Of a stretch of 64,000 nucleotides of DNA, positions 29,564 through 32,793 are shown piece by piece (the first letter of the stretch is position 1; every line of letters begins with the position of its first letter). The stretch covers positions 1-64,000 of IMG/VR virus record IMGVR_UViG_3300005965_000002. The stretch is one strand, 5' to 3'. The notes beneath the pieces are model-generated. The model was not told the DNA's origin. It searched no databases and worked only from the letters and a program-made list of their open reading frames with translations. The position numbers and the translations under genes are program-made.

Positions 29564-30108
29564 TTATCTTGCATCATAGCTCCGTAAATCTGATTTTTTA
29601 GAGACACCCTCGTTTAGCTGGGTCTCCCAGAAATTTTGATAACACGCATTTAAGCCTGAGGTTTCCATAAGGGTGTTCAGAACAAACACATTTGGTAAGA
29701 CATTATTGTCTTTCCGAAAATTTTTTTCGTCCAACCCCAGAAATCTGTTAGCAAATAGGCCTACGGCTCCTGACCGGCTAATACCGGCATCGCAGTGGGC
29801 TACTAATGTATCTACCCGATCCTTGTTCCTATCAATAAACTCTATAATTCTAAGAGCGCATTCTTTCGAGAACAAAGTTATATCTTCATGCTTGGAAAGC
29901 CTGTTGTACTCCTCAAGGGTAACATCAGAAAATACACATTCCAGATAGTCTTTACAACCTTTTTTCTTCAGTTTATCTTTATCGACAATTGTCTCATCTT
30001 TTGTAGTGGTAATCGATATTAAAGACCAATTATCCCATATTTTTATGGAATCATCTAAAATCATGTCTTTAATAACCATTCTTGGTACTACTATTATTTT
30101 TTGAATCA
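29564..30108 (-). CDS. protein-tyrosine/dual-specificity phosphatase-like protein
   Basis: HCDAGISRS (CX5R) motif. Confidence 0.8.
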
Positions 30109-30807
30109 TACTATCTTCTTTATCGAATGATAGAGCATATGGAATCTTCCAGAATCCCATTCATCGTGCCAGTGTCCGCAATAATATTCAGCGTTTCTGC
30201 ACGTACGGAACACGTCATCTAGGTATAACCTTGTAGAATCCAGCTCCGTAAATCTGGAGCTTAGCCCTATAGTAGCAAAATACATGCGTATAAGAGTCTC
30301 CGGAGCGGTATGAGAGATTACGAAGTCTATTTGGTCTCCCATTTTTTCTAAAATCTTATAGCCTTTTTCTTTTTCCTCAGGTGACGGCACTTCCTGGGGC
30401 CACCAAGTTTTTCCCGGCTTACGCGAGTTCCGGTCGATGCTTTTTGCTCCACCCATAGTAAAAAAGAGTTTACCTTCGATATTATATACGTTACCTCTTT
30501 TTAGGTGAAAAACACTGTCAGAAGTCTTTCCAACAGAGCTGCCAAACATATCCACATCTTCGAACTCTTCAGCCAACCTTGCGTGATTCTCGTGGTTTCC
30601 GTCAACCCAGAGTGTTGTCCAGGGTTTATCATTCAACCACTTTAACCAGTATTCTTCAACGTTATCTTTTTTCGTCCATATCAGACCAAAATCCCCGGCG
30701 ATTATTAAATAATCTTTTTTAGTAAGCGTTTTCCCCTCAGGCCAATTTTTGGAAGAAAGATCGCCCATCCCTAATTCGCCGTGCTTATCTCCAGTAACAA
30801 AAATCAT
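30106..30807 (-). CDS. calcineurin-like metallophosphoesterase
   Basis: GDKHG, GDFG, GNHE, SHT, GHWH. Confidence 0.9.
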   Translation of the reverse strand: MIFVTGDKHGELGMGDLSSKNWPEGKTLTKKDYLIIAGDFGLIWTKKDNVEEYWLKWLNDKPWTTLWVDGNHENHARLAEEFEDVDMFGSSVGKTSDSVFHLKRGNVYNIEGKLFFTMGGAKSIDRNSRKPGKTWWPQEVPSPEEKEKGYKILEKMGDQIDFVISHTAPETLIRMYFATIGLSSRFTELDSTRLYLDDVFRTCRNAEYYCGHWHDEWDSGRFHMLYHSIKKIV

Positions 30808-30968
30808 TTTAATACTCTACTTTATCCGTCTCAAAGGATATACCAGTTTTTTTGACGATAACAGTTACCTGTATATGCTTTAAAGGGATTGGTAAAGGCG
30901 GTAAATAAATGTCTTTTCTATACGGATCATATCTTTTAATCGAAGGAACGAATGGTAACAGTTTTAAG

Positions 30969-31041
30969 CGCCCCCGAAAGGATTCGAACCTTTGACTGAC
31001 TGGTTTTAGGGACCACTCCTCTACCACTGAGGTACGGGGGC
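30969..31041 (-). tRNA. putative amber-suppressor tRNA (anticodon CTA), Trp-like anticodon arm
   Basis: TGGT-CCCTAAA-ACCA; perfect acceptor GCCCCCG/CGGGGGC; G73; C33. Confidence 0.7.
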
Positions 31042-31081
31042 TGATAGTCATTAATATACCTTTGTGATATATTTATTTTAA

Positions 31082-31393
31082 CTACTTTACGATATCAAGG
31101 CTTTTGAAGATACTTCCCAGATCGAAACAAGCTAGTGCTGTTTCTTGGTTGTCCAGGTCTGGCTCCCGAAAAACCGAAAAAATCTTCTCTTCTTTTTCTA
31201 GTTTTTCTTTCCAATACCTGAGGCCCCTCAAATGAGGGACCCCAAGATAAATGAGAGTGCCATTACCCCATGCCTTAAAAAGAGATTCATGTTCTAAGGC
31301 ATACTGTGAAAGCGCGTGGCCTCCTTGTACCAAACCGTAGACTTTGGAAAGATCAAGCCTCACTAGCACATACATCTTTGGCTGTGTAGGCAT
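31082..31393 (-). CDS. Pth2-like peptidyl-tRNA hydrolase
   Basis: KMYVLVRLDL....VQGGHA, FREPDLDNQETALA. Confidence 0.7.
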   Translation of the reverse strand: MPTQPKMYVLVRLDLSKVYGLVQGGHALSQYALEHESLFKAWGNGTLIYLGVPHLRGLRYWKEKLEKEEKIFSVFREPDLDNQETALACFDLGSIFKSLDIVK

Positions 31394-31661
31394 CTTTGAT
31401 CTCCTGAATAGTCTTCCAGTTAGGTTCGTTACCTTCTCTACAATGGTTCTCAATTTCTTCATATTTTCGTCCTCTAAGCAGGCAGTAGGCAATATGACTG
31501 TGGCGGTAGTCAGCCTTTAGAGAAAGAACCTCTGCTTGTTCTCTCCAAGCATTCCCGGTTCCTGACTCCCTTTGGATTGATCTAATCTTGTTTTTGAGTT
31601 CACGTAGACCTAAAGCCTTCTTCTTCAGCGTATTTTTCAGAATTGAATATGAGGTATGCAT
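31353..31661 (-). CDS. hypothetical protein upstream of the Pth2-like gene
   Basis: RHSHIAYCLLRGRKYEEIE; RBS lies inside a hairpin. Confidence 0.7.
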   Translation of the reverse strand: MHTSYSILKNTLKKKALGLRELKNKIRSIQRESGTGNAWREQAEVLSLKADYRHSHIAYCLLRGRKYEEIENHCREGNEPNWKTIQEIKDAYTAKDVCASEA

Positions 31662-31965
31662 TCCGCACTCCTTTAATTAAGTGAATAGTTAATAGATAGC
31701 ACTTAAAAAAGGAATGCTTTAAGGAGGCTTAAAAACTCGGAGGACCTATGTGAATCCGGAAACCTACACAGGTGAGAAAAAGTGGGTCATTTTATTTTCC
31801 TATTAAGATTTAATATTTAAATACCGATAATTTCATCATCGTAAAAATAGGTATCTTTTTCGTGACCACTCTTCATTTTATAGATGAAATAAGTAGCTAC
31901 TAATGCAAGAATACCCGATATAGCGATAATTTTTTTCATACTATGACTCTCAGATTAAAAGATTA

Positions 31966-32793
31966 TTAGATACCCAAGTAATGATGCCCATATTGCTGGA
32001 AGTTATATACTGGGTTTTCTACAATAATTCTTTTGTATTTTTCAATGTAAGCTAAAAACTTTTTTGATTCCTGCGCCCATGATTTTAGGGAATTGCAGGT
32101 AGGGACTGTTCTTACTTTAAGCTTATGCAATAAATCATGTTCCCATTTAAAATGATGAACAAAATTTTTGGAGAAACAGCTATCTACTTCCGGAAAATAT
32201 GTTTCTGTTCGGTAGCCGTTTACTTTTTCTCCGTTCTCCCGCAACAAAACATGATGACCTCCTCCGATGTCTCTCGATGCCTTCGCGGCCATTACCTTTT
32301 TATCCCAGGCACCTAACAGGTAGTGTGTAATAAACCCACCCAGTGAGAATATTTCTTCTAAAGAATATTCTTCTTTAAATAAAGGTAAGTCACCGCTGGA
32401 ATAGACTCTATCTAGTAACCTACCCTCGATTGAATCTAAGAAATGCTCTGAACAATAATTGATTTGATCACGTAAAGGAGGATCAAAGTAATGAAATTCA
32501 TCGCTATCCGCGTAAATCACCCAGTCCTGGTCGTCACAGACCTCATTTTTGGCTTTATTTTCGATCTCTATCTTTTTGTCCTCACTAAAATGTCCGTGCC
32601 AGGATCCATTTCCTTTTACATTATACCGGTTACAGACCTTACTAATACCCTGCAGTATATCGTATGAAAAATCTGGATAAGGCTGGTGGTTAGTAACTAT
32701 AAATTGATCGACACCAAGTCTCTGATAATAGCCAAAGAAACGATCCAGATACTTAATATCAGGACCTATCGTTGTGACTAAATAAATCTTCAT
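31966..32793 (-). CDS. glycosyltransferase family 2-like protein
   Basis: YYQRLGVD, WVIYADSDEF, GGGHH, HHFKW. Confidence 0.75.
   Translation of the reverse strand: MKIYLVTTIGPDIKYLDRFFGYYQRLGVDQFIVTNHQPYPDFSYDILQGISKVCNRYNVKGNGSWHGHFSEDKKIEIENKAKNEVCDDQDWVIYADSDEFHYFDPPLRDQINYCSEHFLDSIEGRLLDRVYSSGDLPLFKEEYSLEEIFSLGGFITHYLLGAWDKKVMAAKASRDIGGGHHVLLRENGEKVNGYRTETYFPEVDSCFSKNFVHHFKWEHDLLHKLKVRTVPTCNSLKSWAQESKKFLAYIEKYKRIIVENPVYNFQQYGHHYLGI

Follow-up and report, generated by a model that had tools for sequence, protein, structure and literature searches.

On the minus strand of one phage genome, we identified a short upstream open reading frame (uORF) that is interrupted by two in-frame amber codons and followed by a hairpin, which pairs with the Shine-Dalgarno (SD) sequence of a 102-residue gene (gene B). 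The same plan was observed in 68 of 74 distinct leaders of this gene family, and the internal stop matches the anticodon of the neighboring suppressor tRNA, with one odd case. These comparisons support the idea that gene B, and probably the overlapping gene with a predicted peptidyl-tRNA hydrolase 2 (Pth2) fold, are translated only when the suppressor tRNA works. As the evidence comes from sequence comparison, we regard this as the most likely explanation, with a probability of about 0.75.

Structure of the leader and the downstream genes

The window analyzed here (64,000 nt) is the first 64 kb of one 258,580-bp contig (Ga0081527_100007) from a hypersaline-lake metagenome, which is 38.6% in G+C and looks like a jumbo phage. 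The contig has 37 tRNA genes, all on the minus strand and all inside the window, and a plus-strand block from about 95 kb to the end that is almost fully covered by ORFs in the standard code. In the 155-nt intergenic leader, the uORF (31790-31719, minus strand) starts with ATG 31790-31788 and reads MTHFFSPV-TAG-VSGFT-TAG-VLRVFKPP-TAA. The first TAG is located at 31766-31764 and is followed by G; the second TAG is located at 31748-31746 and is preceded by Gly-Phe-Thr codons; the Lys-Pro-Pro-stop (AAG CCT CCT TAA) occupies 31730-31719, with the TAA at 31721-31719. One SD-like AGGA (31801-31798) lies 7 nt before the ATG. The uORF reads as given in the preliminary description.

The hairpin (31717-31665) starts one base after the TAA. 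Its 5′ arm (31717-31700) and 3′ arm (31683-31665) are separated by a 16-nt loop (31699-31684); GCATTCCTTT (31717-31708) pairs with AAAGGAGTGC (31674-31665), and TTAAGTG (31706-31700) pairs with CACTTAA (31683-31677). The SD of gene B, AAGGAG (31673-31668), lies inside the 3′ arm, 6 nt before ATG 31661. The same hairpin was reproduced by RNAfold.

Gene B (31661-31353, minus strand) encodes one basic, helical protein, which contains the motif RHxHIAYCLLRGRxYEEIE. Neither Pfam nor PHROG gave any hit, no PDB sequence hit was found and no Foldseek hit was found at E<=0.001. The predicted structure (pLDDT 88) is one helical hairpin plus one C-terminal helix, and the Atlas search returned only uninformative helical look-alikes. 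Gene B is overlapped by 41 nt by the Pth2-like gene (31393-31082, minus strand), whose real start is probably ATG 31393 (103 aa, with its own AGGAG). Although Pfam PF01981 was not hit at E<=0.01, a profile of 34 homologues hits the archaeal Pth2 structures 2zv3, 1rzw and 1xty (E 1e-4 to 0.5). The AlphaFold (AF2) model has a pLDDT of 94.6, and its top 14 Foldseek hits are all Pth2 structures or structural-genomics homologues of the same fold (TM 0.69-0.83). Residues Q17, H20, E71 and T79 are invariant in the alignment.

One tRNA gene with anticodon CTA (30968-31041, minus strand) lies 40 nt after the Pth2-like gene. It is most like the tRNA-Arg(ACG) (77%) and tRNA-Trp (72%) of the phage itself; however, the boundaries given by ARAGORN varied among the tRNAs of the relatives, and the amino-acid identity could not be resolved.

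The leader is conserved as a translated sequence

From one sequence alone, a chance uORF plus an ordinary intergenic hairpin, such as a terminator or processing site for the upstream 40-aa gene, could not be excluded; the fold z-score of the whole leader is modest (-2.4). Searches with gene B of the window alone found nothing in the phage collection (blastn and tblastn) or in IMG/VR, and a second tblastn search of the phage collection with P0013 also found nothing. Relatives came only through a larger protein search, which gave 56 metagenomic homologues, and a family alignment. Three sets of loci (numbered with L below) were fetched: syntenic contigs of the closest homologues (L001-L007), 15 IMG/VR loci and 76 metagenome loci. 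The distinct leaders came from metagenomes, IMG/VR and the cultured Stenotrophomonas phages DLP5, DLP3 and Summit.

In the closest set, the leader is better conserved than the flanking genes. Each relative has an in-frame ATG, a variable N-terminal stretch and then stop-V[SA]GFT-stop-V(L)RV[FL]KPP-stop; the frame is conserved, with synonymous changes, in L001, L003, L005 and L006. The window and L003, whose gene B is 70% identical, differ by nine synonymous changes across the part behind the first TAG. That is the signature of a translated sequence, and it can only be translated if the TAGs are read. The preliminary description had proposed, as an alternative route, a -1 slip at C-TTT-TTC. This is not conserved: L001, which is 93% identical, reads CAC TGT TTC at this place, and more distant relatives have unrelated N-terminal codons. 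One upstream hairpin that carries both TAGs in its arms (about 31771-31742) loses pairs in L005 and is not claimed here.

Among the 74 distinct leaders, 68 share one plan: an ATG, preceded by an SD-like motif in 46 of the 68, 0-13 codons, one (35 leaders) or two (33 leaders) in-frame stops, 2-13 more codons, [K/R/I/G]-Pro-Pro, and then a hairpin and the start of gene B, usually 59-78 nt after the first Pro codon. Pro-Pro is followed at once by a stop in 54 of the 68; in the other 14 it is not, and it may be embedded as RGPP or RAPP. The in-frame internal stops are TAG 101 times, TAA once and TGA never, whereas TAG is only 22 of 122 (18%) off-frame stop triplets in the same stretches. In one fixed 60-nt window before Pro-Pro, chosen without regard to frame, TAG falls in frames 0/1/2 as 105/15/17 and ATG as 72/10/9.

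The wobble bases of the two Pro codons use all four letters (T41/A17/G6/C4 and T35/A17/C9/G7), and Lys is AAA 22 times and AAG 13 times. As estimated from base composition, CCNCCN at this place is expected by chance in about 4 of the 74 leaders, but it was found in 68. Gly-Phe-Thr precedes the second TAG in 18 leaders and is coded GGN TTY ACN. A purine follows the internal stop in 101 of 102 cases, a context that probably favors amber suppression (Bossi 1983; Miller and Albertini 1983); the genuine TAG stops of the genome show no avoidance of a following purine. The leader analyzed here is the only such leader in the 258.6-kb genome.

The start codons and Pro-Pro were picked heuristically, and the leaders are related by descent, so that the counts overstate their independence; however, gene B identity falls to 26-40%, and the leader nucleotide sequences are largely unalignable. 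Six of the 74 leaders do not fit as scored: L013/L072, L015, L020 and L078 (both end RGP-stop), and L071, which has no ATG and whose frame runs on from upstream. Taken together, these comparisons effectively refute the chance explanation; in addition, no U-tract follows the hairpin in the window.

The internal stop matches the neighboring suppressor tRNA

A suppressor-type tRNA was found by ARAGORN within about 0.5-1.6 kb of gene B in 47 of the 68 loci; most of the other 21 are too short to tell. It usually lies 500-900 nt after the start of gene B, right behind the Pth2-like gene, but just upstream in one subfamily. Of the 47 loci, 45 pair a TAG leader with a CTA tRNA. L091 reads MKKR-TAA-IAHTDRGPP-TAA, and its tRNA has anticodon TTA. 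L078, which is outside this count because its leader has no Pro-Pro, reads MKSHI-TGA-LVFIRGP-TAA; its tRNA has anticodon TCA. In the Lak megaphages, a tRNA(TTA) is followed by MKLQHW-TAA-VT...RG(S)P, a gene-B-like ORF and the Pth2-like gene, with Arg coded AGA in Lak-A2 and CGT in Lak-B7. L063 does not fit; it has TAG in the leader, but the only suppressor-like tRNA seen on its 1.5-kb contig is TCA.

The same leader could sense release-factor activity, because suppression is a competition between tRNA and release factor; read-through rises when RF1 (or RF2 for TGA) is scarce, prfB uses an in-frame UGA in this way, and the leader data are equally compatible. However, without a cognate suppressor, near-cognate read-through of UAG is very low, and two UAGs in series would make the output negligible. 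The match between stop and anticodon, including TAA with TTA, where both release factors act, points to the tRNA as the matched partner. We consider the release-factor explanation unlikely.

It is also unlikely that TAG is simply an ordinary sense codon in recoded phages and the uORF a constitutive arrest or coupling peptide that happens to contain it. In-frame TAG is present inside the Pth2-like gene of 12 relatives, and in-frame TGA in that of L078. Many carriers are thus probably recoded, and TAG decoding there is also simply normal late translation. But a sense codon used by chance would not sit at a fixed place in 68 leaders, often twice, directly after a 1-4 codon start, nor would it be the only in-frame stop type. 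DLP5, DLP3 and Summit are annotated in the standard code and still keep the TAG. We found no sign of TAG recoding in the window's own genome: code 11 ORFs cover 96-100% of most 10-kb bins of the plus-strand block from 100 kb to the contig end, TAG ends about 16% of the long ORFs, and only six same-frame ORF pairs are separated by a TAG. In the three pairs inside the window, no PHROG or Pfam domain spans the TAG.

Direct pairing of the UAG triplets with the CUA anticodon, like in a T-box, would also explain the match and the following purine, a feature that T-box specifiers appear to share. It is very unlikely, since TAG, ATG, Pro-Pro and the final stop are all in one frame, the wobble variation shows selection on the peptide, and an SD precedes the ATG in most leaders. 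An Rfam scan of 30800-32100 at E<=1 returned only the tRNA, and no T-box-like distal acceptor-binding element was seen.

The hairpin sequesters the SD of gene B next to the Pro-Pro site

In the MFE folds from the Pro codons to the start, at least part of the SD of gene B is paired in 68 of 68 leaders; at least 75% of the SD is paired in 51 and all of it in 39. For 102 other SD-bearing genes of this genome, the corresponding values are 39% and 19%. The strand that pairs with the SD is either the CCUCC of the Pro codons themselves or a stretch 2-14 nt after them; it lies -6 to +14 nt from the end of the Pro-Pro codons in all but two leaders, and in the window it starts 2 nt after the TAA. In both cases, it is inside the footprint of a ribosome whose P site is on the last Pro codon. 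Although these structures are MFE predictions, compensatory changes were observed: among the four closest distinct sequences, 3 of 11 stem pairs change on both sides and stay paired. A few relatives (L036, L040, L049 and L053) have a U-run after the hairpin, like a terminator. Different from these, no U-tract follows the hairpin in the window, and a terminator scan found none there. A promoter scan found nothing convincing in the leader, only a weak match before the tRNA.

Proposed mechanism

The preliminary description had inferred that only a ribosome passing both ambers could reach and melt the hairpin, and the comparative data support this inference. Without suppression, ribosomes that start at ATG 31790 would be released at the first UAG, 45 nt before the hairpin, which stays closed and hides the SD; a released ribosome might, however, still affect downstream folding or reinitiate. 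With suppression at both UAGs, the ribosome reaches Lys-Pro-Pro-UAA, and the output should scale roughly with the square of the suppression efficiency. We propose that slow Pro-Pro bond formation and slow release from peptidyl-Pro-tRNA hold it there. With CCU in the P site it covers about 12-15 nt downstream, GCAUUCCUU, the partner of the SD; the SD is freed and gene B is initiated. A stalled ribosome, not a merely passing one, thus probably holds the hairpin open.

The pause and the opening of the hairpin are inferred. RGPP (present in the relatives L035, L044, L050, L052, L056, L066, L067, L069, L074 and L091) and RAPP (L068 and L030) are proven arrest motifs that need little N-terminal context and are not rescued by EF-P (PMC12992588; PMC10951233). 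The window carries VFKPP-stop instead, whose strength as the proposed pause site probably depends on host EF-P and release factors.

Because the tRNA sits in the same apparent transcription unit, the leader would make the proteins depend on the mature, charged tRNA. This fits a feedback governor of suppression or a helper needed only when read-through is on; our best guess is that production of two accessory proteins is tied to the amount of working suppressor. Only tentatively, the leader, gene B, the Pth2-like gene and the suppressor tRNA may form one self-governing cassette, in which the two proteins act back on suppression, for instance by hydrolyzing (peptidyl- or aminoacyl-) suppressor tRNA, rescuing ribosomes that ran past stops or opposing a release factor. 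It would provide a set point for tolerable read-through in standard-code phages or a sharp commitment switch in recoded ones, and would be the portable unit with which phages, from 96-kb siphoviruses to Lak megaphages, acquire and tame stop-codon reassignment.

Comparison with known systems

Leader peptides that read tRNA charging and arrest peptides that unmask an SD are well known, whereas no natural leader whose input is nonsense suppression was found described in the papers we could search. Like ermCL-ermC, SecM-secA, MifM-yidC2 and ApdA/ApdP, the uORF ends in a Pro-rich motif and the footprint of the presumed stalled ribosome overlaps the arm of an SD-holding hairpin. However, the input is not an antibiotic, a pulling force or a small molecule, but whether the ribosome can get through one or two stop codons; the peptides are far shorter (10-25 residues), leaving no room for a targeting signal or TM segment. 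Like in trpL, hisL and pheL, the leader codons match the tRNA being read and ribosome position would decide between alternative folds, but the diagnostic codon is a stop codon, success in decoding would turn the genes on, and control in the window is on SD access.

In PepNL-pepN of Escherichia coli (PMC11890864), read-through of its own UGA by near-cognate Trp-tRNA relieves an arrest at that stop; here, read-through by a dedicated suppressor is needed to reach a later, inferred arrest site. Like the leader, prfB (RF2) uses an early in-frame stop as a sensor of termination capacity, but it escapes by +1 frameshifting at CUU UGA, helped by an internal SD, and makes the sensed factor itself; no such slippery site or internal SD is conserved here. 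Synthetic switches with TAG in the tna leader (reviewed in PMC6412442, citing Liu et al. 2011) follow the same logic, but they are engineered and act through Rho or transcription. The 'code change module' of recoded phages (suppressor tRNA, aaRS and RF; Borges et al., 10.1101/2021.08.26.457843) is likewise built around a suppressor tRNA and found in recoded and standard-code phages, but it has no described leader, gene B or Pth2-like gene; the words leader, uORF, readthrough and hydrolase do not occur in that paper.

If it works as proposed, the leader gives a direct handle on how phages that carry suppressor tRNAs time and limit read-through, ties gene B and the Pth2-like gene to suppressor-tRNA biology, and offers one compact natural part (about 130 nt) for reporting or gating on amber, ochre or opal suppression.

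Organization of the cassette among phages

The cassette of leader, gene B, Pth2-like gene and suppressor tRNA is syntenic across loci. The Pth2-like gene follows gene B in 72 of 98 loci, but it is absent in the Stenotrophomonas phages, where the tRNA follows gene B by 7 nt. The core is therefore the leader, gene B and the suppressor tRNA. DLP5, DLP3 and Summit carry AGGAG-N6-ATG AAG TAG GTC TAC AAG CCG CC(C/G) TAA, then a hairpin holding GGAG, then gene B and tRNA-Sup(CTA).

Variation of the leader and hairpin among the relatives

In one subfamily of the leaders located upstream of gene B (loci L035, L044, L050, L052, L056 and L074 of the relatives), the uORF reads ..GFT-TAG-x(2-3)-RGPPY.., and no stop follows PP. 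The sequence is RGPPYYIVL in five of these leaders and RGPPYILGL in L056. Different from the other arrangement, the CTA tRNA of this subfamily lies upstream instead of downstream. One near-consensus TTGACA-N16/17-TATAAT is present inside the hairpin loop; a second, uORF-free transcript may start inside the leader. In the leaders of four other relatives, L036, L040, L049 and L053, the hairpin is closed by CCUCC/GGAGG or CCUCCUU/AAGGAGU and is followed by a run of 6-7 U just before the start codon. In these leaders, the same stall could also prevent intrinsic termination.

Besides the hairpin that follows the uORF, a second hairpin (ACCUGUGU / ACAUAGGU) was predicted on the minus strand of the window (31742-31771), which places the two TAG codons in its two arms. 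Although this hairpin is kept in the relative L003, it loses pairs in L005, and its reality is therefore doubtful.

Internal stops and suppressor tRNAs of the relatives

In 13 relatives, the Pth2-like gene contains one in-frame stop, which is of the same kind as that of their leader and tRNA but is located at varying positions. The stop is TAG in L081, L034, L036, L043, L039, L049, L063, L044, L087, L070, L082 and L061, whereas it is TGA in L078. These carriers are probably recoded phages, or the gene is gated a second time. The one mismatch to the stop-anticodon rule is L063, a contig of 1471 bp. Its leader (about 535-646) has TAG, however, the only suppressor-like tRNA on the contig (330-402) is called TCA and lies upstream; no CTA tRNA was found after the Pth2-like gene.

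Lak megaphages carry tRNA(TTA), one TAA-interrupted leader, one divergent gene-B-like ORF (128 aa in Lak-A2) and the Pth2-like gene, as observed at 734-1797 of the Lak-A2 locus (L100) and 541-800 of the Lak-B7 locus (L103). The Prevotella hosts of these phages do not rely on SD, so the output mechanism may differ. In the record of Stenotrophomonas phage DLP3 (MT110073.1; locus L105, 998-1071), the tRNA is annotated as tRNA-Glu; however, ARAGORN reads its anticodon as CTA, as in the DLP5 and Summit records, in which it is annotated as a suppressor. The Pth2-like domain also occurs outside the cassette. In ORF364 of Xanthomonas phage XacN1 (locus L099, 961-1800), it forms the C-terminal part of one 279-residue protein, and neither tRNA nor gene B was seen nearby.

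Genomic surroundings of the cassette

All 37 tRNA genes of the 258.6-kb genome sit at 2056-59314 of the 64-kb window, on the minus strand and interspersed with small ORFs; the rest of the genome has none. Directly upstream of the leader, one 40-residue ORF with a hydrophobic N-terminus (MKKIIAISGILALVATYFIY...) is present on the minus strand (31817-31939), and it is syntenic in the relatives L001-L006, where it is 39-43 residues in size. On the other side of the cassette, just after the tRNA, the minus strand (29564-30807) carries a metallophosphoesterase (phrog_1649, 30106-30807) and one weak dual-specificity-phosphatase-like ORF (29564-30160), both of which are syntenic in L003 and L004. Outside the window, the genome contains three more same-frame ORF pairs that are separated only by a TAG, at 245533-250053 (+), 148683-150308 (+) and 89102-93256 (-).
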